From Lepidodermella squamata (lineage: Eukaryota > Animalia > Gastrotricha): a DNA stretch of 64,000 nt. The DNA lies in the NCBI GenBank assembly GCA_047495785.1, contig JBLDXI010000009.1:1-64000 (forward strand), read 5' to 3'. Under the pieces are notes generated by a model. It saw nothing but the letters and a program-made list of their open reading frames with translations, ran no database searches and was not told where the DNA came from. Position 1 is the stretch's first letter; each line of letters opens with the position of its first letter. This document shows, in pieces, positions 5,252-46,073 of the stretch. The translations under genes and the position numbers were made by a program.

Positions 5252-6060
5252 GATGACCGTCTGATATTTAATTTATGACATGGAACTGTTTATATGAGAT
5301 AAAATGATTACGATAATAAATACATTCGACATTTTCAATAAGTCACTAATAAATTATATTATGGGGAAATTTAAATGCTGCACGATAATAAAATAAAGTT
5401 TTTCACGCATGAAATCACGCATTCACGTGATCTTACACACACGCAAAAATTAAGCATGTGGCGCCTGACCTTGCTTGGATAAACGTGGCCTGCTGCCTAT
5501 TTAAGTGCTCAAGCTAGCAGAATAAAATCATTCTTTTGCAAGAGGTAAAAGTCACTGATGAGCTACCCTAGCCAAGTAGCGAAACCGGTCTGATAAAGGC
5601 TACCTCTTAGTTTACGGTTACATTTCATTCATGGTTTATGCAGTTACAATTGCTGGTTTAACTGGTTTAAGCAGTTACAAACGACAACTTTCTTTGGAGT
5701 TTCGGTAATGAACTTGTTTAATTAATGTTTGCGAGTTTATACAGCAGTCCCCCGTGACTATCTAATTATATCGGCGAACCCCTCGTGGTCCTGATATTGA
5801 ATATTATCGGATTAATCTCGCGCGGTTTCCGATCGTTCCATTGTTTGTTCTGATCACTGAGACCACGTTCTCTGGATCGGCTCCCGAGGGAGTAGTGGTA
5901 GGGCCCGGTGTCATTCTCTTCGGAGAATCCCCGGTTTACAGCTCGTCTGTATTAAATCATTACAATAACCCTAACTGATCTTGCCCGTTCGGTACAATGT
6001 ATCACCAAGAAACCAAAGGGGCTGTGAAGGGGAACGAGGTGCTCTTGAGCGAAACCAAAA
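5252..6060 (+). mobile_element. Family-1 pseudo-LTR/3' module, copy 1 (promoter-like motifs, hammerhead, structured region, TAACCCTAAC, 85-bp tail)
   Basis: Unique sequence interrupting the satellite; appears identical to 11282-12090 and nearly identical to 16245-16957; contains a hammerhead core. Confidence 0.85.
5540..5608 (+). ncRNA. Type I hammerhead ribozyme, predicted cleavage after C5590
   Basis: GTCA-CTGATGA-GCTAC(cctagccaa)GTAGC-GAAA-CCG-GTC^TGAT; distal stem AAGAGGTA/TACCTCTT; minimal palindromic stem III (ACCGGT) as in PLE hammerheads. Confidence 0.92.
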
Positions 6061-11281: not shown

Positions 11282-12090
11282 GATGACCGTCTGATATTTA
11301 ATTTATGACATGGAACTGTTTATATGAGATAAAATGATTACGATAATAAATACATTCGACATTTTCAATAAGTCACTAATAAATTATATTATGGGGAAAT
11401 TTAAATGCTGCACGATAATAAAATAAAGTTTTTCACGCATGAAATCACGCATTCACGTGATCTTACACACACGCAAAAATTAAGCATGTGGCGCCTGACC
11501 TTGCTTGGATAAACGTGGCCTGCTGCCTATTTAAGTGCTCAAGCTAGCAGAATAAAATCATTCTTTTGCAAGAGGTAAAAGTCACTGATGAGCTACCCTA
11601 GCCAAGTAGCGAAACCGGTCTGATAAAGGCTACCTCTTAGTTTACGGTTACATTTCATTCATGGTTTATGCAGTTACAATTGCTGGTTTAACTGGTTTAA
11701 GCAGTTACAAACGACAACTTTCTTTGGAGTTTCGGTAATGAACTTGTTTAATTAATGTTTGCGAGTTTATACAGCAGTCCCCCGTGACTATCTAATTATA
11801 TCGGCGAACCCCTCGTGGTCCTGATATTGAATATTATCGGATTAATCTCGCGCGGTTTCCGATCGTTCCATTGTTTGTTCTGATCACTGAGACCACGTTC
11901 TCTGGATCGGCTCCCGAGGGAGTAGTGGTAGGGCCCGGTGTCATTCTCTTCGGAGAATCCCCGGTTTACAGCTCGTCTGTATTAAATCATTACAATAACC
12001 CTAACTGATCTTGCCCGTTCGGTACAATGTATCACCAAGAAACCAAAGGGGCTGTGAAGGGGAACGAGGTGCTCTTGAGCGAAACCAAAA
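11282..12090 (+). mobile_element. Family-1 pseudo-LTR/3' module, copy 2
   Basis: Direct repeat of 5252-6060 at +6030 bp. Confidence 0.85.
11570..11638 (+). ncRNA. Type I hammerhead ribozyme, cleavage after C11620
   Basis: Identical to 5540-5608. Confidence 0.92.
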
Positions 12091-16531: not shown

Positions 16532-16600
16532 AAGAGGTAAAAGTCACTGATGAGCTACCCTAGCCAAGTAGCGAAACCGGTCTGATAAAGGCTACCTCTT
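16532..16600 (+). ncRNA. Type I hammerhead ribozyme, cleavage after C16582
   Basis: Same sequence as the other family-1 hammerheads. Confidence 0.92.
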
Positions 16601-16957: not shown

Positions 16958-17048
16958 TAACCCTAACCCTAACCCTAACCCTAACCCTAACCCTAACCCT
17001 AACCCTAACCCTAACCCTAACCCTAACCCTAACCCTAACCCTAACCCT
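16958..17048 (-). repeat. Telomeric repeat tract (TTAGGG)15, between two retroelements
   Basis: Perfect (TAACCC)n on the + strand. Confidence 0.97.
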
Positions 17049-17192
17049 TTAAGAAGTAAAGGCGTCAACGTAACCTGTAACTTCCAAAAGATGGTAGTAG
17101 CAGGACACTTTTCATGCTGTACTTTATCTCTTCCATCTTCTTTGTTTTAAATAGACTTGTGTTAAATTAAAACGATTTATCAAAGCAATATC

Positions 17193-18109
17193 ATGAGCAT
17201 GCCGCATAAACACGCCAAGTTCAACAACGAAGCGGACAATCAAGGATACAGTAACTACGGCAACCAACGTGGTCGCGGAAGTTACCGCGGAAACCGAGGT
17301 GGATCATCGAACCGAGGTTATAACCACAACAATTTCTCGGGCCAATCGGGCAAGCGTCCCAACAACGAACAAGGAAATGTGGACAACGACCTTCTGGCGA
17401 TCGTCGAAGAGTACACCAGCAACAAGGGCCAGACCGGCTCCACTGACCACGATGCTATGCGTAAGAAAATGTTTTCGGCTCTGAACACTACACTGGAGGC
17501 TACGAAATCGCTAAAAAATCTAGCGGTGCGTAAGAGCGAGATTACCAATAGATCGACGAACGTTATGAGCCTTCTCAAGATAATCAACTCACAGACGGAA
17601 TTCAAGGCCGTGGTTCACGACAACCTTGAAAAGGTAAGAATTGATCGTATTTGACGACTCTATTCAAATTTATAAACAGGCCATGGATCTGGTTCGCAAA
17701 GGCATTCAAAACGAGACAATTGTCTGCTTGATGAAAGCTATGACCGAATGGCTCAACCTGAAGAGCATCTACGACGGAACCGACGAGACCAAGCGCGCAG
17801 AACTCAAGCAAGTCCTCACATCGGTATGGTTGGGTTTTGCAGAGGCTAACGCAGATCTTCAGGGTGAAATGAAACTCGATTGGAACGGGTTCCCAAAGAT
17901 CAGCATGCCAAACGCATTGGAGAAATCGATTACCGAGGCAACAATTTTCAAAATCGCTGTTAAACTTCACGACGAAAAGCAAGCCGACGCTGCCTTAATG
18001 GATCTCACCACGAACTTTTGGCGAATTATCCGCCGCCAAGACGATATGCTCAGTGACGAGCTAGTTCGCAACGGTATCCCGATGGATATAAACCAAGAAG
18101 AGAATCCAA
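17193..18109 (+). CDS. ORF1 of the PLE: RGG/Asn-rich N-terminus plus helical (coiled-coil-like) region; exons 17193-17633 and 17680-18109, continuing via a second intron
   Basis: A 46-nt GTAAGA...AACAG intron (17634-17679) joins the 153-aa and 165-aa ORFs in frame (..LEK|AMDL..); GTAAGT donor at 18110. Confidence 0.8.
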
Positions 18110-18164
18110 GTAAGTTAAAACTTCTTACCTCCGTCTAATAGACTTAAAATTATAATTTGAATAG

Positions 18165-20161
18165 CTCTAACTTGGATAAAATTACTGGATTTCCACGGAA
18201 AAAATTCGAACAGGAAACATAACTCTATTGCGGTTTCTTTGACAACATTATTATTCAACCAAAACTGGAACTTCTCACTAGTTGGGAAATTTTGCCCTTT
18301 CTACCCAAATAAGCTATTATCTTCAAAATTAAAGGAGGACCTAGTGACTACTGCTGTCGAATGTCGGGAACATAAAATCGAGTTTTTGAACAAAAAATCC
18401 CTATTAAAACATTTGACAGCACGGCATTTGATTGATCTAGTTGATATTGAACAAATACCTGAGCTAACTAACACTATTTACCCCGGAGGACAAAAAATCT
18501 TCAACAGTATAGTTATTCACAAAACCGACCCCCCAGCGTTCCCATTATCAAACGAAAATCAAATCTGGGCCGATAAAGGAATTATCGACCTTACCGGGAA
18601 ACTCTCTGATGAGGTGAAGAAGACGCTTTCTCTCGGTTTACAAAGTGTGGTGTTGACTAAACAATGTATCCTTGAAAACTTTGAGGAATTTCAGACACTT
18701 CAAAATCATCTAAAAACAAAAATCCCTCGAAAATTGAACCGAGAATTGGGCCTAGCAACTAATAAACTGCTGAGGAACTCGACAAGCAAACTGGAAATAG
18801 CCCCAGACTCTGTCTGGATTACTAAGGGTGATAAAGGTAATACGATTGTCGCCCTAGACAGAGAAACCTACCAAAGAATGGGGGAAAAATTCTTAGCAAA
18901 TCCCAACACCTATGAACCTTTTACTAACGATGGAAAAGATGACTTTTTGAAATCATTAACCGAATTGAAGAGCTACTGGTTTCGTAATTCGCCTAGCACT
19001 TTCCCAAGCTGGAAAGGTCTTTTCAAAGTAAAAACCGAGCTTCGCACTAAATTCATTTACTTTCTACCAAAATTACACAAAAACCTTGATGAGGAGGGAC
19101 TCTTAAAAGTCCGACCAATTTCTGATTGCACTAACACCTTCACTTCTACTGCTGACAAATTCATCCACAAAAAATTAAGAAACGCGAGGAAAACGTTGGA
19201 AACAGTGGTTCACAGCAGCACCGAAGTATTGGAAAAAATTAGAAAGCTTAATAACTCTCAGGAAGGGTTGGCTCGAGCGGTACTTATCACTGCTGACATC
19301 AGCGATATGTACAACCAAATACCACTTACCGAAGCGGTTGACGCAATAGCCAACTACCTAAATGAATTTGAAGTACTCCTCCCTGAAGCAAGACCCCTAG
19401 TATGTCGGGCAATTTACATTATCCTAAGTAGCAGCATCGTTAAGTTTAACGGAAAATGGTACAAACAAAAACAAGGATTGGCCATGGGAGGCCATCTATC
19501 TCCTTGGGTTGCTAATAATTGGCTCTTCTACATGGAACGAAAACTGTGGCTACTATTCCGGCCCATCCTGGCTTGCCGTTATCTAGATGACCTATTTTCC
19601 ATGTTCCTAAATACAGATAGGGCAGATGCGTTCATGAATGAATACGGAAATCTACACCCTAACATCAAACTGGAAATCACACGCTCAAACCAAAAAGTCC
19701 AATATCTCGACCTAGTCATTTTCAAAGAAGGGAATAAAATCAACACAAGTGTCTTTTTCAAACCCACGGACGGTTTGCAACTACTACACCGCTCATCAGT
19801 CCACCCTGATCACATTTTTACGGGAGTTGTAGAATCCCAAATCTTACGCTATTTCCGAATTTGCTCGGAGTATCGAGACTGGTTAAGGGCATGTCTAAGC
19901 CTATGTAGTAACCTATTAAGGCGGGGATATTCTTGGGAAACACTGGCAAGTTCTGTGAGAAATACTACTATTAAAATCTCCGATCGACCGTGGCCTTTTA
20001 CGGCCAAGAAACGGGGTAACCAAAAGTTCGAAACCAGAAATGTTATTCGATACTGCCCAAGCCTAGAGAAAGGCTACAACTATCTGAAAAAACATGGGCG
20101 GCTCACCTTGAAAATTAATCATAACCTACGAAAGAAATATTGTCGGTCGGAATTCAAATGA
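18165..20161 (+). CDS. Penelope-like reverse transcriptase, no endonuclease; probably translated as a spliced ORF1-RT fusion
   Basis: Motifs KGDKG, YFLPKLHK, RPIS, LITADISDMY, QGLAMGGHLSP, RYLDD, YLDL, LHRSSVHP; stop codon shortly after the thumb with no GIY-YIG; no ATG near the start; frame open from 18161. Confidence 0.93.
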
Positions 20162-20308
20162 ACATGTTTAACTCTAACTCTTTTCCAGGTCACTGAAACA
20201 ATCACGAAGGCATCAATAGCTGGGAGAAAAGACAATGAATTTACTCATTATCCTTTGAATTTAACTCGAATCGAATAAAAACGTTGTGTTCATCTGAAAG
20301 TTTTTTTC

Positions 20309-20866
20309 ATGGTAAAAGGTAACAATCCTAATGTAGCATGGCTCGCTGATCAAGCGGAGGAGGATGTAACAACGAAGTACAGCGATTCATCTGAGGCCTC
20401 TTCCTTAGAAGAATCGGAGAATGACGCCGCAAATACGGCTTTGATCACAAGTAGCAACATCGACCCTACAACTCTAAACCTGATTAGTACACCGCGAATG
20501 AACCTGGCAAGTCACAGTAACTCAACACCGGGTTGCTCAAAATCAAACACCAATACACCTATCGCCTTGAGTCAGAAGAGAAAACGATCTTATGGTTTAC
20601 CTAATGAATCCTACGAACCAGTTAGTCAAAAAGCAAAACGAGAACTAGACTGGTGGGGAAAGATGCAAGAATCGCCACAAGCCTCAAAAATCATGGTATT
20701 CACGAAACTCGGACCGAAACGCTACGGATGTTGCGTCACTGACTGCGATGAAGAACGCCAGCGAGTCGACGGTATGGAAAACCACTTTTTGAACGATCAC
20801 CCTGACCTCTTAGGGATGGCCAAAACACTGATCGCGTTGCGAGATCTGAACAAAAAAGCTAAATAA
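20309..20866 (+). CDS. ORF3 of the PLE: acidic/Ser-rich N-terminus, NLS-like KRKR, C-terminal C2H2 zinc finger
   Basis: 185-aa ATG ORF; C-x4-C-x12-H-x4-H (CCVTDC...HFLNDH); AATAAA at ~20900. Confidence 0.7.
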   Translation: MVKGNNPNVAWLADQAEEDVTTKYSDSSEASSLEESENDAANTALITSSNIDPTTLNLISTPRMNLASHSNSTPGCSKSNTNTPIALSQKRKRSYGLPNESYEPVSQKAKRELDWWGKMQESPQASKIMVFTKLGPKRYGCCVTDCDEERQRVDGMENHFLNDHPDLLGMAKTLIALRDLNKKAK

Positions 20867-21106
20867 GTTGTAGCTCACCTATGCTCTCTGATATGGACAA
20901 ATAAAACGTGAAAAGAGAATGGTACAGTATCTGTAAAACACCGCAACACGGATAACAAATACGAAACTTCACAAACGTAACAAGGCAACGAATGGGAAAC
21001 ATTAAATCAGAACATGTCAAGTTTTACTTAACTCAGATATTAATAGCTAAAACTTGTCAAATTCAAAATAAAAATTATTCTCTTGATCTCACCCCAGTTT
21101 CCATTA

Positions 21107-24100
21107 AAAGCAAGTCCATGGTACTTCTGAGTCCTACGAGTCCGAATATGGTACCAGATTTACGAAGGAATCTCGGGAAAAGATTCCAGGTCGATTTTAG
21201 ATGGCCAATTCTGAAAATTTTGGACCTTTCAAATTTTTCTGAAATTTTTCGGATCTCCGTGCTTTTATCGATGGAAAGCAAGTCCATGGTACTTCTGAGT
21301 CCTACGAGTCCGAATATGGTACCAGATTTACGAAGGAATCTCGGGAAAAGATTCCAGGTCGATTTTAGATGGCCAATTCTGAAAATTTTGGACCTTTCAA
21401 ATTTTTCTGAAATTTTTCGGATCTCCGTGCTTTTATCGATGGAAAGCAAGTCCATGGTACTTCTGAGTCCTACGAGTCCGAATATGGTACCAGATTTACG
21501 AAGGAATCTCGGGAAAAGATTCCAGGTCGATTTTAGATGGCCAATTCTGAAAATTTTGGACCTTTCAAATTTTTATGAAATTTTTCGGATCTCCGTGCTT
21601 TTTTCGATTGAAAGCAAGTCCATGGTACTTCTGAGTCCTACGAGTCCGAATATGGTACCAGATTTACGAAGGAATCTCGGGAAAAGATTCCAGGTCGATT
21701 TTAGATGGCCAATTCTGAAAATTTTGGACCTTTCAAATTTTTCTGAAATTTTTCGGATCTCCGTGCTTTTATCGATGGAAAGCAAGTCCATGGTACTTCT
21801 GAGTCCTACGAGTCCGAATATGGTACCAGATTTACGAAGGAATCTCGGGAAAAGATTCCAGGTCGATTTTAGATGGCCAATTCTGAAAATTTTGGACCTT
21901 TCAAATTTTTCTGAAATTTTTCGGATCTCCGTGTTTTTTTCGATTGAAAGCAAGTCCATGGTACTTCTGAGTCCTACGAGTCCGAATATGGTACCAGATT
22001 TACGAAGGAATCTCGGGAAAAGATTCCAGGTCGATTTTAGATGGCCAATTCTGAAAATTTTGGACCTTTCAAATTTTTCTGAAATTTTTCGGATCTCCGT
22101 GCTTTTATCGATGGAAAGCAAGTCCATGGTACTTCTGAGTCCTACGAGTCCGAATATGGTACCAGATTTACGAAGGAATCTCGGGAAAAGATTCCAGGTC
22201 GATTTTAGATGGCCAATTCTGAAAATTTTGGACCTTTCAAATTTTTCTGAAATTTTTCGGATCTCCGTGCTTTTATCGATGGAAAGCAATTCCATGGTAC
22301 TTCTCAGTCCTACGAGTCCGAATATGGTACCAGATTTACGAAGGAATCTCGGGAAAAGATTCCAGGTCGATTTTAGATGGCCAATTCTGAAAATTTTGGA
22401 CCTTTCAAATTTTTATGAAATTTTTCGGATCTCCGTGCTTTTTTCGATTGAAAGCAAGTCCATGGTACTTCTGAGTCCTACGAGTCCGAATATGGTACCA
22501 GATTTACGAAGGAATCTCGGGAAAAGATTCCAGGTCGATTTTAGATAGCCAATTCTGAAAATTTTGGACCTTTCAAATTTTTCTGAAATTTTTCGAATCT
22601 CCGTGCTTTTATCGATGGAAAGCAATTCCATGGTACTTCTGAGTCCTACGAGTCCGAATATGGTACCAGATTTACGAAGGAATCTCGGGAAAAGATTCCA
22701 GGTCGATTTTAGATGGCCAATTCTGAAAATTTTGGACCTTTCAAATTTTTATGAAATTTTTCGGATCTCCGTGCTTTTTTCGATTGAAAGCAAGTCCATG
22801 GTACTTCTGAGTCCTACGAGTCCGAATATGGTACCAGATTTACGAAGGAATCTCGGGAAAAGATTCCAGGTCGATTTTAGATGGCCAATTCTGAAAATTT
22901 TGGACCTTTCAAATTTTTCTGAAATTTTTCGGATCTCCGTGCTTTTATCGATGGAAAGCAAGTCCATGGTACTTCTGAGTCCTACGAGTCCGAATATGGT
23001 ACCAGATTTACGAAGGAATCTCGGGAAAAGATTCCAGGTCGATTTTAGATGGCCAATTCTGAAAATTTTGGACCTTTCAAATTTTTATGAAATTTTTCGG
23101 ATCTCCGTGTTTTTTTCGATTGAAAGCAAGTCCATGGTACTTCTGAGTCCTACGAGTCCGAATATGGTACCAGATTTACGAAGGAATCTCGGGAAAAGAT
23201 TCCAGGTCGATTTTAGATGGCCAATTCTGAAAATTTTGGACCTTTCAAATTTTTCTGAAATTTTTCGGATCTCCGTGCTTTTATCGATGGAAAGCAAGTC
23301 CATGGTACTTCTGAGTCCTACGAGTCCGAATATGGTACCAGATTTACGAAGGAATCTCGGGAAAAGATTCCAGGTCGATTTTAGATGGCCAATTCTGAAA
23401 ATTTTGGACCTTTCAAATTTTTATGAAATTTTTCGGATCTCCGTGCTTTTATCGATGGAAAGCAAGTCCATGGTACTTCTGAGTCCCACGAGTCCGAATA
23501 TGGTACCAGATTTACGAAGGAATCTCGGGAAAAGATTCCAGGTCGATTTTAGATGGCCAATTCTGAAAATTTTGGACCTTTCAAATTTTTATGAAATTTT
23601 TCGGATCTCCCTGCTTTTTTCGATTGAAAGCAAGTCCATGGTACTTCTGAGTCCTACGAGTCCGAATATGGTACCAGATTTACGAAGGAATCTCGGGAAA
23701 AGATTCCAGGTCGATTTTAGATGGCCAATTCTGAAAATTTTGGACCTTTCAAATTTTTATGAAATTTTTCGGATCTCCGTGTTTTTTTCGATTGAAAGCA
23801 AGTCCATGGTACTTCTGAGTCCTACGAGTCCGAATATGGTACCAGATTTACGAAGGAATCTCGGGAAAAGATTCCAGGTCGATTTTAGATGGCCAATTCT
23901 GAAAATTTTGGACCTTTCAAATTTTTATGAAATTTTTCGGATCTCCGTGTTTTTTTCGATTGAAAGCAAGTCCATGGTACTTCTGAGTCCTACGAGTCCG
24001 AATATGGTACCAGATTTACGAAGGAATCTCGGGAAAAGAATCCAGGTCGATTTTAGATGGCCAATTCTGAAAATTTTGGACCTTTCAAATTTTTATGAAA

Positions 24101-27100
24101 TTTTTCGGATCCCCGTGTTTTTTTCGATTGAAAGCAAGTCCATGGTACTTCTGAGTCCTACGAGTCCGAATATGGTACCAGATTTACGAAGGAATCTCGG
24201 GAAAAGATTCCAGGTCGATTTTAGATGGCCAATTCTGAAAATTTTGGACCTTTCAAATTTTTCTGAAATTTTTCGGATCTCCGTGCTTTTTTCGATTGAA
24301 AGCAAGTCCATGGTACTTCTGAGTCCTACGAGTCCGAATATGGTACCAGATTTACGAAGGAATCTCGGGAAAAGATTCCAGGTCGATTTTAGATGGCCAA
24401 TTCTGAAAATTTTGGACCTTTCAAATTTTTATGAAATTTTTCGGATCTCCGTGTTTTTTTCGATTGAAAGCAAGTCCATGGTACTTCTGAGTCCTACGAG
24501 TCCGAATATGGTACCAGATTTACGAAGGAATCTCGGGAAAAGATTCCAGGTCGATTTTAGATGGCCAATTCTGAAAATTTTGGACCTTTCAAATTTTTCT
24601 GAAATTTTTCGGATCTCCGTGTTTTTTTCGATTGAAAGCAAGTCCATGGTACTTCTGAGTCCTACGAGTCCGAATATGGTACCAGATTTACGAAGGAATC
24701 TCGGGAAAAGATTCCAGGTCGATTTTAGATGGCCAATTCTGAAAATTTTGGACCTTTCAAATTTTTATGAAATTTTTCGGATCTCCGTGCTTTTATCGAT
24801 GGAAAGCAAGTCCATGGTACTTCTGAGTCCCACGAGTCCGAATATGGTACCAGATTTACGAAGGAATCTCGGGAAAAGATTCCAGGTCGATTTTAGATGG
24901 CCAATTCTGAAAATTTTGGACCTTTCAAATTTTTATGAAATTTTTCGGATCTCCGTGCTTTTATCGATGGAAAGCAAGTCCATGGTACTTCTGAGTCCTA
25001 CGAGTCCGAATATGGTACCAGATTTACGAAGGAATCTCGGGAAAAGATTCCAGGTCGATTTTAGATGGCCAATTCTGAAAATTTTGGACCTTTCAAATTT
25101 TTATGAAATTTTTCGGATCTCCGTGCTTTTATCGATTGAAAGCAAGTCCATGGTACTTCTGAGTCCTACGAGTCCGAATATGGTACCAGATTTACGAAGG
25201 AATCTCGGGAAAAGATTCCAGGTCGATTTTAGATGGCCAATTCTGAAAATTTTGGACCTTTCAAATTTTTATGAAATTTTTCGGATCTCCGTGTTTTTTT
25301 CGATTGAAAGCAAGTCCATGGTACTTCTGAGTCCTACGAGTCCGAATATGGTACCAGATTTACGAAGGAATCTCGGGAAAAGATTCCAGGTCGATTTTAG
25401 ATGGCCAATTCTGAAAATTTTGGACCTTTCAAATTTTTCTGAAATTTTTCGGATCTCCGTGCTTTTTTCGATTGAAAGCAAGTCCATGGTACTTCTGAGT
25501 CCTACGAGTCCGAATATGGTACCAGATTTACGAAGGAATCTCGGGAAAAGATTCCAGGTCGATTTTAGATGGCCAATTCTGAAAATTTTGGACCTTTCAA
25601 ATTTTTCTGAAATTTTTCGGATCTCCGTGCTTTTATCGATGGAAAGCAAGTCCATGGTACTTCTGAGTCCTACGAGTCCGAATATGGTACCAGATTTACG
25701 AAGGAATCTCGGGAAAAGATTCCAGGTCGATTTTAGATGGCCAATTCTGAAAATTTTGGACCTTTCAAATTTTTATGAAATTTTTCGGATCTCCGTGTTT
25801 TTTTCGATTGAAAGCAAGTCCATGGTACTTCTGAGTCCTACGAGTCCGAATATGGTACCAGATTTACGAAGGAATCTCGGGAAAAGATTCCAGGTCGATT
25901 TTAGATGGCCAATTCTGAAAATTTTGGACCTTTCAAATTTTTATGAAATTTTTCGGATCTCCGTGTTTTTTTCGATTGAAAGCAAGTCCATGGTACTTCT
26001 GAGTCCTACGAGTCCGAATATGGTACCAGATTTACGAAGGAATCTCGGGAAAAGATTCCAGGTCGATTTTAGATGGCCAATTCTGAAAATTTTGGACCTT
26101 TCAAATTTTTATGAAATTTTTCGGATCTCCGTGTTTTTTTCGATTGAAAGCAAGTCCATGGTACTTCTGAGTCCTACGAGTCCGAATATGGTACCAGATT
26201 TACGAAGGAATCTCGGGAAAAGATTCCAGGTCGATTTTAGATGGCCAATTCTGAAAATTTTGGACCTTTCAAATTTTTCTGAAATTTTTCGGATCTCCGT
26301 GCTTTTTTCGATTGAAAGCAAGTCCATGGTACTTCTGAGTCCTACGAGTCCGAATATGGTACCAGATTTACGAAGGAATCTCGGGAAAAGATTCCAGGTC
26401 GATTTTAGATGGCCAATTCTGAAAATTTTGGACCTTTCAAATTTTTATGAAATTTTTCGGATCTCCGTGCTTTTATCGATGGAAAGCAAGTCCATGGTAC
26501 TTCTGAGTCCTACGAGTCCGAATATGGTACCAGATTTACGAAGGAATCTCGGGAAAAGATTCCAGGTCGATTTTAGATGGCCAATTCTGAAAATTTTGGA
26601 CCTTTCAAATTTTTCTGAAATTTTTCGGATCTCCGTGCTTTTTTCGATTGAAAGCAAGTCCATGGTACTTCTGAGTCCTACGAGTCCGAATATGGTACCA
26701 GATTTACGAAGGAATCTCGGGAAAAGATTCCAGGTCGATTTTAGATGGCCAATTCTGAAAATTTTGGACCTTTCAAATTTTTCTGAAATTTTTCGGATCT
26801 CCGTGCTTTTATCGATGGAAAGCAAGTCCATGGTACTTCTGAGTCCTACGAGTCCGAATATGGTACCAGATTTACGAAGGAATCTCGGGAAAAGATTCCA
26901 GGTCGATTTTAGATGGCCAATTCTGAAAATTTTGGACCTTTCAAATTTTTATGAAATTTTTCGGATCTCCGTGTTTTTTTCGATTGAAAGCAAGTCCATG
27001 GTACTTCTGAGTCCTACGAGTCCGAATATGGTACCAGATTTACGAAGGAATCTCGGGAAAAGATTCCAGGTCGATTTTAGATGGCCAATTCTGAAAATTT

Positions 27101-30100
27101 TGGACCTTTCAAATTTTTATGAAATTTTTCGGATCTCCGTGTTTTTTTCGATTGAAAGCAAGTCCATGGTACTTCTGAGTCCTACGAGTCCGAATATGGT
27201 ACCAGATTTACGAAGGAATCTCGGGAAAAGATTCCAGGTCGATTTTAGATGGCCAATTCTGAAAATTTTGGACCTTTCAAATTTTTATGAAATTTTTCGG
27301 ATCTCCGTGTTTTTTTCGATTGAAAGCAAGTCCATGGTACTTCTGAGTCCTACGAGTCCGAATATGGTACCAGATTTACGAAGGAATCTCGGGAAAAGAT
27401 TCCAGGTCGATTTTAGATGGCCAATTCTGAAAATTTTGGACCTTTCAAATTTTTCTGAAATTTTTCGGATCTCCGTGCTTTTTTCGATTGAAAGCAAGTC
27501 CATGGTACTTCTGAGTCCTACGAGTCCGAATATGGTACCAGATTTACGAAGGAATCTCGGGAAAAGATTCCAGGTCGATTTTAGATGGCCAATTCTGAAA
27601 ATTTTGGACCTTTCAAATTTTTATGAAATTTTTCGGATCTCCGTGCTTTTATCGATGGAAAGCAAGTCCATGGTACTTCTGAGTCCTACGAGTCCGAATA
27701 TGGTACCAGATTTACGAAGGAATCTCGGGAAAAGATTCCAGGTCGATTTTAGATGGCCAATTCTGAAAATTTTGGACCTTTCAAATTTTTCTGAAATTTT
27801 TCGGATCTCCGTGCTTTTTTCGATTGAAAGCAAGTCCATGGTACTTCTGAGTCCTACGAGTCCGAATATGGTACCAGATTTACGAAGGAATCTCGGGAAA
27901 AGATTCCAGGTCGATTTTAGATGGCCAATTCTGAAAATTTTGGACCTTTCAAATTTTTATGAAATTTTTCGGATCTCCGTGCTTTTATCGATGGAAAGCA
28001 AGTCCATGGTACTTCTGAGTCCCACGAGTCCGAATATGGTACCAGATTTACGAAGGAATCTCGGGAAAAGATTCCAGGTCGATTTTAGATGGCCAATTCT
28101 GAAAATTTTGGACCTTTCAAATTTTTATGAAATTTTTCGGATCTCCGTGCTTTTATCGATGGAAAGCAAGTCCATGGTACTTCTGAGTCCTACGAGTCCG
28201 AATATGGTACCAGATTTACGAAGGAATCTCGGGAAAAGATTCCAGGTCGATTTTAGATGGCCAATTCTGAAAATTTTGGACCTTTCAAATTTTTATGAAA
28301 TTTTTCGGATCTCCGTGCTTTTATCGATTGAAAGCAAGTCCATGGTACTTCTGAGTCCTACGAGTCCGAATATGGTACCAGATTTACGAAGGAATCTCGG
28401 GAAAAGATTCCAGGTCGATTTTAGATGGCCAATTCTGAAAATTTTGGACCTTTCAAATTTTTATGAAATTTTTCGGATCTCCGTGTTTTTTTCGATTGAA
28501 AGCAAGTCCATGGTACTTCTGAGTCCTACGAGTCCGAATATGGTACCAGATTTACGAAGGAATCTCGGGAAAAGATTCCAGGTCGATTTTAGATGGCCAA
28601 TTCTGAAAATTTTGGACCTTTCAAATTTTTCTGAAATTTTTCGGATCTCCGTGCTTTTTTCGATTGAAAGCAAGTCCATGGTACTTCTGAGTCCTACGAG
28701 TCCGAATATGGTACCAGATTTACGAAGGAATCTCGGGAAAAGATTCCAGGTCGATTTTAGATGGCCAATTCTGAAAATTTTGGACCTTTCAAATTTTTCT
28801 GAAATTTTTCGGATCTCCGTGCTTTTATCGATGGAAAGCAAGTCCATGGTACTTCTGAGTCCTACGAGTCCGAATATGGTACCAGATTTACGAAGGAATC
28901 TCGGGAAAAGATTCCAGGTCGATTTTAGATGGCCAATTCTGAAAATTTTGGACCTTTCAAATTTTTATGAAATTTTTCGGATCTCCGTGTTTTTTTCGAT
29001 TGAAAGCAAGTCCATGGTACTTCTGAGTCCTACGAGTCCGAATATGGTACCAGATTTACGAAGGAATCTCGGGAAAAGATTCCAGGTCGATTTTAGATGG
29101 CCAATTCTGAAAATTTTGGACCTTTCAAATTTTTATGAAATTTTTCGGATCTCCGTGTTTTTTTCGATTGAAAGCAAGTCCATGGTACTTCTGAGTCCTA
29201 CGAGTCCGAATATGGTACCAGATTTACGAAGGAATCTCGGGAAAAGATTCCAGGTCGATTTTAGATGGCCAATTCTGAAAATTTTGGACCTTTCAAATTT
29301 TTATGAAATTTTTCGGATCTCCGTGCTTTTATCGATGGAAAGCAAGTCCATGGTACTTCTGAGTCCTACGAGTCCGAATATGGTACCAGATTTACGAAGG
29401 AATCTCGGGAAAAGATTCCAGGTCGATTTTAGATGGCCAATTCTGAAAATTTTGGACCTTTCAAATTTTTATGAAATTTTTCGGATCTCCGTGCTTTTAT
29501 CGATTGAAAGCAAGTCCATGGTACTTCTGAGTCCTACGAGTCCGAATATGGTACCAGATTTACGAAGGAATCTCGGGAAAAGATTCCAGGTCGATTTTAG
29601 ATGGCCAATTCTGAAAATTTTGGACCTTTCAAATTTTTATGAAATTTTTCGGATCTCCGTGTTTTTTTCGATTGAAAGCAAGTCCATGGTACTTCTGAGT
29701 CCTACGAGTCCGAATATGGTACCAGATTTACGAAGGAATCTCGGGAAAAGATTCCAGGTCGATTTTAGATGGCCAATTCTGAAAATTTTGGACCTTTCAA
29801 ATTTTTCTGAAATTTTTCGGATCTCCGTGCTTTTTTCGATTGAAAGCAAGTCCATGGTACTTCTGAGTCCTACGAGTCCGAATATGGTACCAGATTTACG
29901 AAGGAATCTCGGGAAAAGATTCCAGGTCGATTTTAGATGGCCAATTCTGAAAATTTTGGACCTTTCAAATTTTTCTGAAATTTTTCGGATCTCCGTGCTT
30001 TTATCGATGGAAAGCAAGTCCATGGTACTTCTGAGTCCTACGAGTCCGAATATGGTACCAGATTTACGAAGGAATCTCGGGAAAAGATTCCAGGTCGATT

Positions 30101-30645
30101 TTAGATGGCCAATTCTGAAAATTTTGGACCTTTCAAATTTTTATGAAATTTTTCGGATCTCCGTGTTTTTTTCGATTGAAAGCAAGTCCATGGTACTTCT
30201 GAGTCCTACGAGTCCGAATATGGTACCAGATTTACGAAGGAATCTCGGGAAAAGATTCCAGGTCGATTTTAGATGGCCAATTCTGAAAATTTTGGACCTT
30301 TCAAATTTTTATGAAATTTTTCGGATCTCCGTGTTTTTTTCGATTGAAAGCAAGTCCATGGTACTTCTGAGTCCTACGAGTCCGAATATGGTACCAGATT
30401 TACGAAGGAATCTCGGGAAAAGATTCCAGGTCGATTTTAGATGGCCAATTCTGAAAATTTTGGACCTTTCAAATTTTTCTGAAATTTTTCGGATCTCCGT
30501 GCTTTTATCGATGGAAAGCAAGTCCATGGTACTTCTGAGTCCTACGAGTCCGAATATGGTACCAGATTTACGAAGGAATCTCGGGAAAAGATTCCAGGTC
30601 GATTTTAGATGGCCAATTCTGAAAATTTTGGACATTTCAAATTTT
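21107..30645 (+). repeat. 168-bp satellite (~57 monomers) inside the PLE
   Basis: Period 168 bp, no indels seen, few recurrent SNP variants. Confidence 0.97.
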
Positions 30646-30948
30646 GGATCAACTCCTTGGATTTTTATGTTTACCCCGATTTTTTAATTGGAGCAGAATC
30701 TGTAGGGACTCCTTAGCACGAATATCAACATTTTAAACGGTCATGATTGAAAACGGAAACGCTGTAATAAGAATTAAAGTTTAAAGAAAAAATGTAATTT
30801 TGGCACCAGATGTGCCCTGAAAAACATGTTTTGTTTCGTCATTAACTAATCGCGTGCGCCACATGCGCCACTACGACTCAGTCTGTTACGCTCATTCAAT
30901 TTATCAAAGCCTTTAAAAGGCATTAAAATCGTATACAAATTTATTATT

Positions 30949-31019
30949 GAGGTTTTAAATGTCACTGATGAGCTACCTTAGCCAAGTAGCGAAACCGGTC
31001 TGACAATTAGGCTAACCTC
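30949..31019 (+). ncRNA. Type I hammerhead ribozyme (family 2), cleavage after C31000
   Basis: GTCA-CTGATGA-GCTAC(cttagccaa)GTAGC-GAAA-CCG-GTC^TGAC; distal stem GAGGTT/AACCTC. Confidence 0.92.
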
Positions 31020-31107
31020 TTATATTCACTCTTCCTCATGCTACCTTTACCTCTTGGATCCTAAAAAAAAAAAAATTATAGGAACCTAGGTTACTTACCG
31101 CTATTTA

Positions 31108-31219
31108 ACGGGCGCCTCCCAGGAGCGTGGTACGTTAGTTGGTGGACGGGCGCCTCTTCGGAGTGTGGTACGTCGGGTTATGGATGAGACGCGCGCCTCT
31201 ACGGAGTGTGGAACGTCTC
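31108..31219 (+). ncRNA. Three tandem hairpin modules (two with UNCG tetraloops) in the PLE 3' region
   Basis: GCGCCTC-(CCAG/TTCG/TACG)-GAGYGTGG, closed by AACG/CGTT, GACG/CGTC and GAGACG/CGTCTC. Confidence 0.6.
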
Positions 31220-31340: not shown

Positions 31341-31346
31341 CTAACC

Positions 31347-31387
<41 letters not shown>

Positions 31388-31450
31388 CCCTAACCCTAAC
31401 CCTAACCCTAACCCTAACCCCAACCCTAACCCTAACCCTAACCCTAACCC
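31341..31450 (-). repeat. Telomeric repeat tract (TTAGGG)~18, the proximal attachment site
   Basis: (CTAACC)n with two variant units (CTAAACC, CCAACC). Confidence 0.97.
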
Positions 31451-39684: not shown

Positions 39685-42164
39685 TCAAGAAACAGTATAT
39701 TCTTCAATCACAGGTTCCGCCGCATCTGCGTCGAATTGATTTGCCAACTGGCTGGCACGAGCAGAAGTTCCGAGGCGTTCTTCGCGCTGCTCGGTAGCTG
39801 CCTCACTTTCACTCTGATCATCGTCATCAGCGTCGCTGTCTTGCTGGCTACCGCTGTTCCACTCTGACTTTTCCTGCATGGCGCCGTATGCCGATAACGG
39901 TTCATCGTCAGCGTGGGCGTATTCACGACGCACGTCGTCGTAGCGCCACGCCGTCAATCGATCGCGGCCGCGCTTTGCGTGACTGCCGGCGGCAGAGCTG
40001 ACAAGAACACCGCCTTGAACGACTGCGTCCCAACATGCCGCAAGTTGACACACCTGCGCAGCCAATAATTTCGTGAGCAACTCAAGAGAGCTCTTGGCAT
40101 CGGGGCGTGAGGCTGACTTCATTAGCAACTTGCGGCCGATTTGAACATTGACGTCGTCTTCAATTTGCTGTTACAGAATAAGCACAGAATAAGTTAAAAT
40201 AAAAATTGATGATGAAAACTTACATCTAGAATTACGCTCGTTTCGCTTTTACCGACACCAGTGGCTGATAGGGCAAAGAGAGGCCACTGACAAGGGTATG
40301 CTGCTGGAATTATGACATCGGCCACAAGAGTCACTATAAAAATAATACATCTAGCGATACTTGAGAGCATCAGGCCCGGACACTTACACTTAGCCTTCTC
40401 AAGTTTAATTCGGTAGTAGAACCCTCGCTCGTTCATGCTCGTAAAAGAGGTACTGCGCAAAGCAGCCTGGGGCAGCTCCAACTGATTGGCGGCGGCCAAG
40501 TCAACGGCGGCTTTCGACCCATCCAATTGGCCTAATAGATTGAATTCGGTGATACGAACATTAGCAGCGAGGTGTGACGGGAACGGGATTGCATCCAGTC
40601 CCTGAAGCACGCTCAAGGGAAACTGCTGCGTTTCGACGTCATCGAGAATGTTGTACAATGCCAGCCTAGAAGAAACACGTTCCGCAATAGCAGCGACAAA
40701 TTTGTCGGCTGTTAGAGCTGATTTCAAGAATTCGGTCTGTTCGAGGCAGTCGATTGTAATTGGAAGGGCCCCGCCAAACGATTGCAGCCAGGGGTGGGCA
40801 GCGTTCAACGCTGCGCTTGCTGCCGGCGTCAATGAGCTAGGCAGCTTTCGGCGAACGGCGGCGGATATAAAAACAGGACGACGGCGCTTCTTGATCAGGT
40901 CAGCCAAGAGCAACTGCGGACAGTCGAGGAGTGGCATAATCTTAGCCGGTATCATCGTAGTCAGGACGTTGCCCATCGAGTCTATAAGAGAAAGCTTGGC
41001 CTCAGCAACGAGCAGCTCATTGAGGTCTGGAAAACACGAAATCACCACTCGCAACTGTGCACTGGCTGCGTGGAGAACCAGGGCCACGCTGAAATCATGA
41101 ACATGAGTCGAAAGGTCTTTGAAAGCTGACGATGCTATGGATGAATTGGCGGTGGTCGGCACAATGTCGACGCTTTTCAGCTGACTCTCGGCGCCGACTT
41201 CTAACAGTGCACGCAGTTTGACGAAAATAGCATGAAGAGGCTGCGGCAAGTTCGCAGACTTTTCCGCCTGATAACGAATGGATTGATCGCTGATAGGCGC
41301 CGCCGAAGCCTTGCCGTTGCCCTTCAAAATCTCGTCCAAGCCACCGCTGGCTTCGATCACAGTCCGCAAACGCGGCCGCAGCGCATCGAGCAACGACCGC
41401 TTCGAGTCGATGCGGGCTGAGACGGCGTCGACCTCAGCTTCGACAGCTTTCAGCTGTTCAGCCAACGCCTTTCTTTGCTCCAACTCCCATGACAACCTAG
41501 CTTTAAACAGCTCATGGTCATTAGTACGAGTTTCCTCCGGCCTCGAAATCGAGCTTGGTGCTGCGGCATAGAATTCTTCGACTGGTACCAATGGAATGTC
41601 GTCGGCCCGTGATCTAAACATACGGCATGCCGCTATTTGGCGTTCTAAATGGCCAACTTCATAGAGCTAAGGAAGGAAAAATGTATACTTATTTTTGTCA
41701 TCACTCGAATTTCAGTTAATTACCAGATTCTCAAGTGCAAGATGCTTGTTTTCAGCAGATTGCCGCGCCGTCGCTACTGCGTCGCGAGATGATTTCAAGC
41801 GGAGTTGCAGCAATCTATTGACATTTCGCAATCCGACCAGGCTAACTCGAACGTTGGGGGCCTGAGCTTTCTTGGAAACCTCTTTCGGATCGCTGGAGAC
41901 CACACTTCTGACGACATCACACAGCTTGAGATCTTCAATGAGGCAGCTATCTGTTTTCATCGATGTCGCCGTGGATTCTTCAGCCGTATATGCCAGCTGT
42001 TCAACTTTGTCATCAACAGATGGCGCAGCATTTGAAGGCACTGATGTGGCTTCGGAAACAGGAGTAACTCGAGCAGTTTTCGCTACACTCCCAGTTTCAC
42101 TGGTGGTTTCAGTTTTTGCAGCGACACTGACTCGAGCTGTGCGCTTGGGAGCCGTATTAGACAT
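39685..42164 (-). CDS. THOC5: THO complex subunit 5 (FMIP), multi-exon
   Basis: LRNVNR...LENL|LYEVGHLERQIAACRMFRS...LVPVEEFY..AP...RLSWELEQRK; C-terminal RGRDR motif. Confidence 0.88.
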
Positions 42165-42311: not shown

Positions 42312-43310
42312 TTAGAGCACAAATCGACGGCGGCTCGCTTCCATCTCATGGTGTCTGAAGATCCATTCAAACTCTCCATGTTTGCAGTCGAAGGTGGTAG
42401 GCTGTAGCGCGCGTAATCTGAGAGTGAACCTCGGCCCAACTTCGTTGAGCTTGAACGGTCGAGAGGTCGTAGATGGACCAAATCGATGTTGCCGAAAGAA
42501 AATGTAATCACGCTGGTTGTGGAACGTAACAACGCGCCCATGCTCGACAGGTACTGGCGGGGCGTTACTGCAGCTACCTGGAAAAAGGCTAGCCAACAAA
42601 TTTCCAATGCGAACGCCCAAGCGTGTTGTAAAATTGTTGGCGAGCAGTTGCGGCGGCGGATCAACCTGTTGGCCGGACATGAGCTTCCTCCGCTTAGACG
42701 GCGGTGCTACTCTGGCACTTTGCTGGCGTGACATACCGTGCAGCTCACCTGCGAGTTGCATGCTGCTGAGTCGAAATCTCGCTGTCGGACCGTCAGGCAG
42801 ACGACTGATCAGCATACCTGTTGGCTCTTCGCGATTTTCCGTGACTATAACATATGTCGTGTATCCGAGTGCAACCAACTGTTTAGTCGAGCGCTTGATA
42901 GAGACCCTCCTCCGCCATCGAAACTCGCAGTTTGGAATAGTTGCGGCAAGTTGTCGACAAAACATTCTAGTGCGGCGCGAAGGTTCGATAGAACACGTTA
43001 GCAAAACTTTGTGGCTTGGTTCCACTTCATCTTCTACTGCTTCAACATCCGTGACATTTTTCAACTTTCCTTCGTCAATTAACACTTCTTCATCGCCAGA
43101 TGGAACCTCGGTGTTATCAAGTTCACGCATATTTTCAATAGTCTTGGGTATTTCTTTCGGTCGTCCATCAGCTAAACGCTGCTTCCGTCGAGCTATGCGC
43201 TCCTTTCGCTGCTGAATTTTCAAATCCCGAACAAGGCTCTTTCGCTTTTCCTTATTCTTTACATCTGACAATCTCGACTTCAAAAAATCAATGGTTCCTT
43301 CTTGCTCCAT
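42312..43310 (-). CDS. RPF1: Ribosome production factor 1 (Brix domain), single exon
   Basis: IPKTIENMRE, LPDGPTARFRLS, NNFTTRLG, VTFHNQRDYIFFR, EVGPRFTLRL, MEASRRRFVL. Confidence 0.93.
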   Translation of the reverse strand: MEQEGTIDFLKSRLSDVKNKEKRKSLVRDLKIQQRKERIARRKQRLADGRPKEIPKTIENMRELDNTEVPSGDEEVLIDEGKLKNVTDVEAVEDEVEPSHKVLLTCSIEPSRRTRMFCRQLAATIPNCEFRWRRRVSIKRSTKQLVALGYTTYVIVTENREEPTGMLISRLPDGPTARFRLSSMQLAGELHGMSRQQSARVAPPSKRRKLMSGQQVDPPPQLLANNFTTRLGVRIGNLLASLFPGSCSNAPPVPVEHGRVVTFHNQRDYIFFRQHRFGPSTTSRPFKLNEVGPRFTLRLRALQPTTFDCKHGEFEWIFRHHEMEASRRRFVL

Positions 43311-46073
43311 TGCCGAGGAAGTGATTAATAACAAACTATAAAATCGAACAACATATGAAATCGCAAGCTGTTCCGTGATATTAAATACAACAAATCAAGA
43401 TTTGGGGTCCCGAAAAGAATCTGCAATGATATCAAATGATTACGCTCCGATTTGAACTGGTCATCAAATATAAAAGCAGGCTCCGAGTCGGCGTGGTGTA
43501 ATACCCAAATACATTGGTTTGTGCGTGCAGTTTGAAGTCTATAGTATTAGGAATGGAGCAAACGCAGCGTGAATTACACTGCGCAAAATACCCGTCCATC
43601 GTAAATCAAAATAAGTATTCATGTTTCGCGGTAAATCTGAGGTGAATTTGTGCAAAAAATTAACCGATTTTTTTAGGATCGGGTATACTTCAAGAAAATG
43701 CAAAATGTTTACGGTGCAAACATGATTTATCGCAAACGACAAGCGAATCGCAGACCAGGGACAGGACTTTTAGCGCAGTTTACAGACTGGCTGAAATACT
43801 GCGAAAGTTTTCAACTTCGGACCAGCTTCGTGCCATTCACATCAGTACGAATTTGACTATCAATTTTTACATGCCCACAAAGTTCACATTTCGAGCCACT
43901 GAAAATGAACCGGATAAAAGTCTGTTAGGCAGCTTTCACTGTAAATATAATTTTTGTTCATCTTGGCATTGAAGACGCTGTTGACCGGCGAATAAGTAGG
44001 CCCAAAAATTGTAGGAGAACTAAGAACCAAGGGAAGTCAACATTTCATCAGAGGAAAGAGTGAAGTTGTTCTCACTAACAGTAAATTGCCCTAGGGATGC
44101 CGCCGCATTACAGAGCTCGTCACTATCATCATCTTCCGTTATATTGCAACAAGAAATGTAAACCCAATGAAACCAATGAAACGAATCCAAATCGTCGCTC
44201 GATTTGGTAAGGAAACTTAGTGTAATAATTTTATAAATATAGTTGCTCGCGTTTACAACTCAAACTTTAGGAAAAAGTATAATTTAAAGAGAGGTTAATC
44301 CTCAAATCGACCGTAGCACACACAAACTGCATCGAGTATTCCTGATGCAGAGTTCTTACTATGCTGGAGCGTCGAGTGGTGAGTGGTGAGTGGTCGCGCC
44401 GCGACTCCAGTCTTCACCCCCAAAATGACGTGTGGCCTACTTTGAAAAGCGACCACAGGGGGGACCCTTACTATTTATGGGCGTGGCGTACAAAAATTCG
44501 TTTCTCTAAATTTTCAAGTCTAATCGTCGCGACTGAAATACTGCGAAAAAACGAGGCATTTTATACCAGGCGGAGTAGTATTGGGATATTTAGCGAGCTT
44601 TGAGTGTGCTCCTGTGCTGATTGGCTGCTAAACTCGGAAATTGACACTACCCTACTCGGTGTGCGGCGTTCGCGCGCGATGGCTCGGTTTTGGATTATCT
44701 ACGCCACTGGGATTATCCGGGGATCCGTATCAGAGGCTTGAAATCGAAAGTCACAACACGCAAAACATCAGCCCAAGCTAAACAGCGTCATCAGCCAGAG
44801 AATGCGGCTTGAGAGCGCAGTTTGGAAAGTTCCTCGAACTAAAAAACATTCGTTATTTTTTCTTGACATTTAATAAAATGTGGCATTCTCGATGCATAAA
44901 TATTGTTACCTTATATAAAAAAATGAATGATTATGTTTTAAAATTACGGAAAACAGCTGATTTTAAATCTTCCCGGCTCCGCGTCAGCTGTTTTTTGACG
45001 GCGGTGTGGCGCTGCGTCTTTTGCTACGGTGTGTTAGTACGTGTTTTTGCAGCTATGATTTTTTTTGTCCGACTGTCGTGTGCACTACATTGTTTGAGCT
45101 ATTGGCGTGCATTAATATTTTTTCTCGTCAATATTCTTACAATGCCGACCACGAACCAGAGTTTATAGCTTGTTTTTGTTGAGAGATGCTGTCTGATTTT
45201 AGGCCGTGTTTGTTACCATCTTTAATCCTGGCTTCTCAGTGGAATAGATGAATTCACATTCATCTCTGCGAAGCCGCGTCACTTAGAGTCTTCTGATAGC
45301 ATATATTCTATTTCAGTCTTTAGTTTCTTTAGTAGTTTCCTTTTCTGTCATGTAGCATTTCTTTTTGGGTATGATGTAAGTATTTCAAAATCGAAATAAA
45401 TCTGTATTTGTATCTACGCTGCGCAAAAAAGTCCGGTCCACCTAGTCAAAATGATCATTTTCGTGGGGAATTTGTGCACAAGTTCTTTGAGATCGGGTAT
45501 GCATCAAGAATGCAAACCCTTCATAAATTTCACTTAATTACCTCTATATTCTATACTTCAAAAACCTCATGAATCCACCATTGGTTAAGAATTTATATTA
45601 GATAGATTCCAAGAATTATTTTTTTACAGCGGCTAACTTTCAACTTCCATAAGAAGGTTTGGTTGTATCAGACTGAAAGATTTTCCGGGTAAGAAAATTC
45701 AAGGAGAAAGCGAAGACAATAAATGTTTCATGTCCCTTCCGTGATCCCCTTATGAAAGCTTTATATCAAAGACTCAGTGTCGCTCTGATATATTTAAAAT
45801 GTTTTACATTCTGGCTTTGGATAGCAAACAACGCGTGTCGTAATCAAGGTGGATTTCCAACGAAGAGTGGAAGATGAGAGGGAAGAAGAAGAAGGAAGAA
45901 GAAGAAGGAAGAAAAGGAGACGGAAGAGGAAGAACGAATTACGCCGAATTTGAAATAGGGAGTGGCGTTCCTTTAACTTATCAGGTCGTATCAGGATCAC
46001 AAATTTTCCTTCATTCCCTTTTGAAATTTTATTCTTTCCGTAGATTGCTTTATAGCATAAATTGACAGTCAAA

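Follow-up and report, generated by a model that had tools for sequence, protein, structure and literature searches.

One splice donor and candidate distal acceptors around the reverse transcriptase of a telomeric Penelope-like element in the gastrotrich Lepidodermella squamata

The first 64 kb of contig C9 in the 121-Mb genome assembly of the gastrotrich Lepidodermella squamata (GCA_047495785.1; contig JBLDXI010000009.1, positions 1–64,000; here called the window) contain a 14.3-kb unit bounded by two (CCCTAA)n tracts, at 16958–17048 and 31341–31450. The upstream tract marks the 5' boundary of the unit and is at the same time the 3' tail of the unit before it; the downstream tract is the unit's own 3' tail. 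Between them, on the + strand, lie in order a first open reading frame (ORF1), a reverse transcriptase (RT) frame, a zinc-finger frame (ORF3), a 168-bp satellite, a hammerhead ribozyme core and the telomeric tail. We describe here the coding region of this unit, a Penelope-like element (PLE), in which a single splice donor at the end of ORF1 is followed by candidate acceptors both before and beyond the RT.

ORF1 and its fusion to the reverse transcriptase

ORF1 is divided between two exons. Exon 1 (17193–17633) starts at an ATG and encodes an N-terminus rich in RG and RGG. It is followed by a 46-nucleotide (nt) intron at 17634–17679 (GTAAGA...ACAG, phase 0), and removal of this intron is required to join the ORF1 frames 17193–17633 and 17680–18109. 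Exon 2 (17680–18109) ends after the first base of a codon, at a shared phase-1 donor with its GT at 18110–18111 (context ...GAGAATCCAA/GTAAGT). The RT exon (18165–20161, stop TGA at 20159–20161) is ATG-less: its frame opens at 18161, directly after a TGA at 18158–18160, and no ATG lies near its start. Removal of a 55-nt proximal intron (18110–18164, GTAAGT...ATAG), with its acceptor AG at 18163–18164 and a TCTAAT about 25 nt upstream at 18134–18139, connects ORF1 to the RT frame, with ...ENP-T-L-T-W... across the junction. Within 17100–20161 only two donors score 6/7 on a simple consensus, and these are exactly the two frame breaks. GTAAGT occurs only once in the element.

The RT frame matches Pfam RVT_1 with an expectation value (E) of 3.2e-8, above the curated cut-off. 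Its translation contains ITKGDKGN, with the DKG motif, and YLDD, and its closest database relatives carry RVT_1, DUF8422 and HTH_animal. A frameshift linking ORF1 to the RT was considered and rejected as impossible, because the RT frame opens only at 18161, past the ORF1 stop at 18136–18138.

We compared 13 lineages of these elements, seven from this genome (A, which is the window copy, and B, C, D, E, F and J) and six from other samples (L047, L048, L049, L051, L052 and L054). A table of nine lineages underlies several of the counts given below, among them those of post-RT acceptors and AATAAA sites. Generic splice scores were used throughout, because only four or five host introns can be defined in the window, too few for a host-specific profile. 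Lineage C, on contig C57, is an intronless paralog with one uninterrupted ORF of 944 amino acids (aa) from an ATG. Exon 2 of the window ORF1 matches residues 127–259 of that ORF (BLASTP, E = 1e-7), with the alignment beginning at the first residue of the exon, and residues 284–940 match the window RT frame at 48% identity, again from the first residue of the frame. Immediately past the proximal acceptor comes a conserved (L/I)TW motif. In lineages E and F (33% identity), too, there is one single ORF, of 1040–1084 aa. In the other samples, L047, L048 and L052 have the same phase-1 donor and a proximal intron of their own, 71 nt long in L047 and 128 nt in L048. A donor-like phase-1 GT is retained in all six intronless lineages (B–F and L054), where it precedes the N-terminal motif of the RT by a few codons, and in E, F and L054 this linker donor is the sole one in the ORF1 part that scores at least 5/7.

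On this comparison of frames and sequences we regard the 55-nt intron and the ORF1–RT fusion as close to settled. An earlier reading, made from the letters of the window alone (hereafter the sequence-only reading), had proposed both short introns and the fusion through the proximal acceptor. Its coordinates all proved exact on direct reading of the letters, and the intronless paralog of lineage C fits its gene structure. It had also proposed that the ORF1:RT ratio is set by the choice of 3' splice site rather than by frameshifting, and that the unspliced RNA is the retrotransposed template. The positions of the frames rule out a frameshift link, and the introns retained in the genomic copy are consistent with such a template.

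Several further observations concern the ends of ORF1. In L047 (at 2244) and L052 (at about 965), GT opens the exon that follows the proximal acceptor, so that proximal splicing would regenerate a donor-like site at the ORF1–RT junction; this may be the route by which the intronless lineages kept the donor. Another PLE family, within the same telomeric array at about 203.7–207.5 kb of C57 (loci L030 and L041 of assembly G000), has an ORF1 of 701 aa and an RT of 603 aa that overlap by about 140 nt in different frames. Its ORF1–RT linkage is of the frameshift type, and two strategies therefore coexist in one genome. Upstream of the window ORF1 there is a possible 99-nt intron in the 5' untranslated region (17056–17154), which resembles the 5' untranslated region intron of Penelope. 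Its GTAAAG begins 7 nt after the telomeric tract, and its acceptor at 17154, 38 nt upstream of the ORF1 ATG, is the best-scoring in the whole element. Lineages B and C likewise have strong acceptors just ahead of their ORF1 ATG, at 4003 of C13 in B and at 11014 of the reverse-complemented C57 end in C.

Candidate acceptors and poly(A) signals beyond the RT

A candidate distal acceptor lies just past the RT frame at 20174–20188. It consists of a CTAAC, a pyrimidine tract and a CAG (CTCTAAC-TCTTTTCCAG), and its AG (20187–20188) is 27 nt past the RT stop. Joined to the shared donor (18109^20189), it reads ...ENP-S-H-stop. On the generic acceptor score it takes rank 2 among the element's 205 AGs. 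The 64-kb window has four matches on its + strand, and zero on its - strand, to a composite motif (CTRAY, up to 20 nt, at least six pyrimidines, AG); only the match at 20174–20188 falls in the element, and the shuffle expectation is about 0.004 per given 60-nt stretch. The donor, acceptor and frame signals are not explained by chance. The acceptor is followed by an AATAAA at 20274–20279, the first polyadenylation (poly(A)) signal, and by a GT/T-rich stretch after it.

Counterparts of this site are common in the family. A convincing acceptor was found within about 30 nt of the RT stop in seven of the nine tabled lineages, to which J and L054 add two. In A, E, F and L054 it stands 16–27 nt past the stop; in B, C, D, J and L047 it falls just inside the last RT codons and is in phase 1. 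In lineages with such an overlap the AG is constant, although the encoded residue differs (S, L, I or P). Together with the phase-1 donor it leads to a stop after 1–15 codons in seven lineages, and among about 200 AGs it ranks 2, 1 and 2 in A, E and F, respectively. In L048 the candidate is weak and the join does not close quickly. An AATAAA lies between the RT stop and the zinc-finger acceptor, 39–82 nt ahead of the next acceptor, in eight of the nine lineages; for this placement shuffling gave P values of 0.03–0.31 per lineage, with a product, to be read as an upper bound on significance, of about 1e-8.

Further downstream, ORF3 (20309–20866) encodes an acidic, Ser-rich region and a C-terminal single C2H2-like zinc finger, and in the window copy it has its own ATG at 20309. 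The zinc-finger profile of the family matches the window at 20534–20857. About 110 C-terminal residues of ORF3 align in all lineages (WW..K...PF...C-x4-C-x12-H-x4-H). The predicted fold, a helix, a beta hairpin and further helices, is confident, with a predicted local distance difference test score of about 90 over residues 40–110. Compared with the PDB, the fold model had no match at E <= 0.001, with only weak rows for Ars2/SERRATE and classical C2H2 proteins. Pfam zf-C2H2 matched weakly in two of nine ORF3 members, and in a protein-atlas comparison zf-BED-like entries came first with scores below 0.9, to be taken as leads only. The profile finds 20 places in the genome, each of them beside an RT copy or truncated. 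Among 1.84 billion representative proteins its true relatives are 95–305 aa long and are all stand-alone ORF calls, and the longer matches are ordinary multi-finger proteins.

The ORF3 of lineage E contains no methionine at all, and those of C, D, L047 and L048 have none before the conserved part. Because ORF3 has no usable methionine in these lineages, they need an upstream exon with a start codon. A second candidate acceptor, 47–191 nt past the RT stop, would open the ORF3 frame in phase 1. In the window it lies at 20318–20336, where 20318 and 20336 are the last positions of two phase-1 AGs. Across 18109^20337 the frame reads ...ENP-T-W-L-A-D-Q... and continues for 176 aa up to the stop at 20866; in lineages B and D a W likewise follows directly after the ORF3 junction. 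In a test blind to phase, we took the acceptor with the highest generic score within the opening 150 nt of the ORF3 frame, and it was a phase-1 site in 12 of the 13 lineages (binomial P 1.7e-5 at a null of 1/3, and about 5e-4, a hand calculation, if the null is set to the 45% that phase-1 AGs make up in these stretches, both upper bounds on significance). A second AATAAA stands at 20900–20905, 34 nt past the ORF3 stop, and seven of the nine tabled lineages have one within 100 nt of that stop.

In L049 and L052 the RT-end acceptor and the ORF3 acceptor are one site. Here, in two elements from one metagenome project, the RT-end acceptor itself (L049:2571 and L052:2986) opens the zinc-finger frame, with no AATAAA between, an arrangement that may be a simpler, ancestral form of the layout. 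A fusion of the RT to the zinc finger, by an intron starting where the RT ends, was considered and rejected: its frames would be compatible in C, D and L047, but in the window, E and F the site lies beyond the RT stop.

The window element has a sole close relative in the assembly and is therefore effectively single-copy. This relative, L002 (G000:C15:3519228–3519750, - strand), is an internal 5'-truncated fragment, preceded by a short CCCTAA-like stretch and 81% identical to window 19985–20500. Its ORF3 keeps its own ATG and is interrupted by a stop, and the AG at 20336 is lost. It retains the 20188 acceptor, but this is uninformative on selection because L002 is a dead, 5'-truncated copy.

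Taken over the family, the post-RT acceptor on which the sequence-only reading had built its model has counterparts in most of the 13 lineages, rather than being absent from the relatives, and the AATAAA that it noted after the RT recurs at the same place in most of them. That reading had described one donor with two acceptors. Both acceptors are backed by the comparison, but the set is incomplete, since there is a further phase-matched candidate acceptor at 20318 or 20336. The ORF downstream, which it had taken as unrelated, turns out to be a conserved zinc-finger ORF, usually without a usable early AUG and always with a phase-matched candidate acceptor ahead of it.

Three possible outputs of one donor

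We propose the following model of expression. ORF1, an RGG-rich Gag-like protein, would be assembled by removal of the 46-nt intron and would end at the phase-1 GTAAGT donor at 18110, from which three outlets may lead. Splicing to the AG at 18164 (or retention of the RNA) would yield ORF1–RT, from a messenger RNA (mRNA) ending at the AATAAA at 20274. Splicing to 20188 would remove the whole RT and yield ORF1 with two additional residues, with the same poly(A) site as ORF1–RT. Splicing to the phase-1 AG at 20318 or 20336 would remove both the RT and the first poly(A) site and yield ORF1 with a 176-residue zinc-finger tail, with the AATAAA at 20900 as the end of this mRNA. The layout is best understood as a set of alternative 3' terminal exons that draw on a single donor. 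The unspliced read-through RNA, with the satellite, the hammerhead and the (CCCUAA)n tail, would serve as the template copied onto chromosome ends, and the distal splices would balance structural against catalytic protein.

The signals, frames, homology and conservation are shown here; that the distal splices occur and have this balancing effect is inferred. One donor probably serves the three outputs (ORF1–RT, short ORF1 and ORF1–zinc finger) with two poly(A) sites, and we also think it rather probable that at least one of the distal splices is used. Since the likely system has three outputs, the "ORF1 only" product of the sequence-only reading would at best be one of them. Use of a phase-1 ORF3 acceptor is likely for the family as a whole; for the window copy our judgement is close to evenly balanced on use of that acceptor and leans slightly against use of 20188. 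The broadest form of the proposal is tentative, and we consider it possible but doubtful: that a three-way switch of one phase-1 donor, three acceptors and two poly(A) sites is conserved in telomeric PLEs of several animal hosts, that a Gag-like protein there takes its nucleic-acid-binding C-terminus from an exon downstream of the polymerase while the polymerase acts as an intron, and that this strategy is undescribed for any retroelement class. The model would explain at once an RT without a start codon, a conserved zinc-finger ORF without a start codon and a donor kept in intronless copies.

A number of results weigh against this three-output model. Among the public sequencing runs searched, the one run with the stretch was the source of the DNA itself, at 100% identity in one contig and with no joints. 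Neither the zinc-finger profile among 1.84 billion representative proteins nor word searches gave an ORF1–zinc-finger fusion; searches of public proteins gave no match for the ORF1 part of the intronless paralog and, for the ORF1 of L048, only that protein itself. None of the 20 zinc-finger places in the genome, with C20:18462 left uninspected, looked like a spliced retrocopy lacking the RT. The four or five host introns definable in the window are 50–68 nt long, and an intron of 2.1–2.2 kb would be exceptional here because they are so short. ORF3 of the window copy could start at its own ATG. The phase-1 ORF3 acceptors are mediocre, with 20336 at rank 49 of 205, yet the required proximal acceptor ranks only 66. 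The donor-like site of the intronless lineages encodes a conserved Gly, and a need of the protein could explain its retention. Finally, the P values given above overstate the independence of the lineages and are upper bounds on significance, because the lineages share ancestry.

Part of this evidence would fit a plainer account, in which only the two short introns are spliced, ORF1–RT is made from one mRNA and ORF3 is expressed separately. ORF3 would then start at ATG 20309 in the window copy and elsewhere depend on an internal promoter, reinitiation or a non-AUG start, and the post-RT motifs would serve 3' end formation or RT coding. The ATG shared by the window copy and the 81%-identical C15 fragment speaks for such an arrangement, as do the shortness of host introns, the lack of a spliced product in any data set searched and the overlap of the RT-end acceptor with RT codons in four lineages. 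We nevertheless consider it unlikely. It does not accommodate the ORF3 of lineage E, which has no AUG anywhere, or those of several other lineages that have none ahead of the conserved part; and the phase-1 donor retained in intronless lineages, the best acceptor being in phase 1 in 12 of 13 lineages and the RT-end AG that is kept although the encoded residue varies all speak against it. The exact model of the sequence-only reading, with one donor, two acceptors (18164 and 20188), two outputs (ORF1–RT or ORF1 alone) that share the AATAAA at 20274 as their end, and ORF3 as a separate gene, we regard as decidedly unlikely. It leaves unexplained the ORF3 frames without an early AUG and their phase-matched acceptors, and "ORF1 only" is not an output in L049 and L052, because their sole RT-end acceptor leads straight into the zinc-finger frame. 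What it does capture is that no 3' splice motif in the coding part of the element is stronger than 20188, which has counterparts in most lineages, that such RT-end joins reach a stop in 1–15 codons and that the AATAAA downstream is conserved.

A last alternative makes 20188 a recursive (stepwise) splice site: as CAG/GT it would accept the ORF1 exon, regenerate a donor and be spliced on to the zinc-finger acceptor, so that the only stable distal product would be ORF1–zinc finger. All the sites involved are in phase 1, and a GT follows the AG in six of the eight tabled lineages with the site (A, C, D, E, F and L047) and also in J. A G after the AG is, however, the usual consensus, lineages B and L048 have no GT there, and the donors formed by such splicing would be of low quality (GTCACT in the window). 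A poly(A) signal in use would also account better for the AATAAA between the two sites, and we hold recursive splicing to be highly improbable.

Chromosome-end setting and known relatives

The anatomy of the unit places it among telomeric PLEs. Where contig C13 starts and where C57 ends, paralogs stand in head-to-tail arrays, beside long CCCTAA tracts and in the same orientation, and several of them are 5'-truncated by telomeric repeats. On C9, C13 and C57 alike the elements lie at a chromosome end with their 3' end proximal, in arrays split by short telomeric tracts. The RT is of PLE type, with an RVT_1 core and the upstream DKG motif, and no GIY-YIG endonuclease follows it: RVT_1 is the sole Pfam match of the RT frame ending at 20161, and the ORF after the RT encodes a C2H2-like zinc finger rather than GIY-YIG. 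At the 3' end a hammerhead motif is followed by reverse-complement telomeric repeats. The region is thus the coding and expression core of an intact, endonuclease-free, telomere-attached PLE, a kind assigned here by anatomy.

Most of the length of the element is satellite. About 57 copies of a 168-bp repeat, at 98% identity, fill 21098–30645, in the 3' part between ORF3 and the hammerhead, and account for 9.5 kb of the 14.3 kb. A 2707-aa "ORF" at 22564–30687 is a read-through of this satellite; it carries no real domain and was rejected as spurious. The hammerhead motif at 30947–31022 (CUGAUGAG...CGAAAC...GUC) matches Hammerhead_HH9 at 24 bits (E = 0.0012). As a family match this is weak, because the score is under the Rfam gathering score of 52, and an Rfam scan at the gathering threshold gave no match.

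PLEs are the closest relatives of telomerase, and to our knowledge how they express their proteins is largely unknown. Endonuclease-deficient, telomere-associated PLEs of the Athena and Coprina groups were reportedly described by Gladyshev and Arkhipova in 2007 and are summarised in PMC8557442. Like them, the window element has a PLE-type RT without GIY-YIG, an upstream ORF1, retained spliceosomal introns and a 3' hammerhead followed by reverse-complement telomeric repeats, and it lies head-to-tail at a chromosome end with its 3' end inward. It differs in its tail, which is (CCCTAA)n and not (ACACCC)n. According to PMC8557442, the Athena clade is rotifer-specific; PLE introns are marked as conserved in the legend of its Fig. 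1, where ORF1 is also noted to be separable by a frameshift. The same source reports that long-read cDNA of the PLE Chlamys-3_cRei shows alternative intron use that alters the N-terminus of the protein; there both isoforms keep RT and endonuclease, whereas the alternative proposed for the window element would drop the RT. Terminons are giant Athena-based telomeric retroelements of bdelloid rotifers (PMC6431247). The window element resembles them in its large size (14.3 kb), its telomeric position, its 3' end of hammerhead and telomere repeats and the 5' truncation of its paralogs by telomeric repeats. Terminons have accessory enzyme ORFs (DEDDy, GDSL, Rep), whereas the extra length here is the 9.5-kb satellite of 168-bp repeats; with no accessory enzyme ORFs around its core, the window element does not qualify as a Terminon.

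The proposed mechanism has its nearest parallels outside PLEs. In the copia element of Drosophila, splicing sets an excess of structural protein, and in avian leukosis virus the env mRNA is made by splicing the first gag codons in frame to env. A short GAG-only RNA arises in plant Ty1/Copia elements, EVD among them, when alternative splicing is combined with premature termination (PMC5580714). The window element would be like copia and EVD in that the catalytic region would be spliced out for an excess of structural protein, splicing would be tied to the choice of poly(A) site and the unspliced RNA would be the template. Those are long terminal repeat (LTR) elements with an RT of another clade, their spliced RNA simply ends Gag, and their splicing is shown by RNA data, whereas that proposed here is read from sequence. 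In the model, moreover, one of the outlets would extend ORF1 by a C-terminal zinc-finger domain whose exon lies beyond the polymerase, and in the window copy production of the RT likewise depends on splicing from the ORF1 donor. With retroviral env mRNAs the model shares a polymerase within the removed intron and a downstream ORF that has its N-terminus in common with the upstream ORF. Here, however, the whole of ORF1 rather than a few codons would be common, there are no LTRs, and the downstream ORF encodes a nucleic-acid-binding finger, not an envelope. As an element it belongs to a known kind, the endonuclease-free telomeric PLEs, and its proposed mechanism resembles those of copia, plant Ty1/Copia elements and retroviral env.

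The literature that we searched contained no account of a downstream zinc-finger ORF entered via a phase-matched acceptor, nor of an RT as an optional intron, but the search did not reach the primary Athena and Terminon papers (PMC1890498, PMC5850863), so that a prior description is possible. PLEs like those of the window build chromosome ends, and the model can be tested at the named junctions. If it is true, a switch that combines splicing with polyadenylation would join frameshifting, readthrough and copia-type splicing as a way to balance structural and catalytic proteins, and PLEs whose exons are now called as separate orphan ORFs could be better annotated.

Some minor features surround the element. 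Three further hammerhead cores lie upstream of it on the + strand, at 5555–5585, 11585–11615 and 16547–16577, and are nearly identical to the core at 30965–30995; the last of the three is about 380 nt ahead of the telomeric tract at 16958. They look like parts of non-coding units that have the same 3' end as the element. A 43-bp tandem repeat of 2.7 copies occupies 31108–31217, between the hammerhead and the telomeric tail. Ordinary host genes, which start about 6 kb inward of the last telomeric tract and are those of an animal, are found in 37000–58400. They include THOC5 (40194–42164, - strand), with one 57-nt intron, a gene for a Brix-domain protein (42312–43334, - strand), one for a glyoxalase-fold protein and a fragment of a Cys-loop receptor gene.

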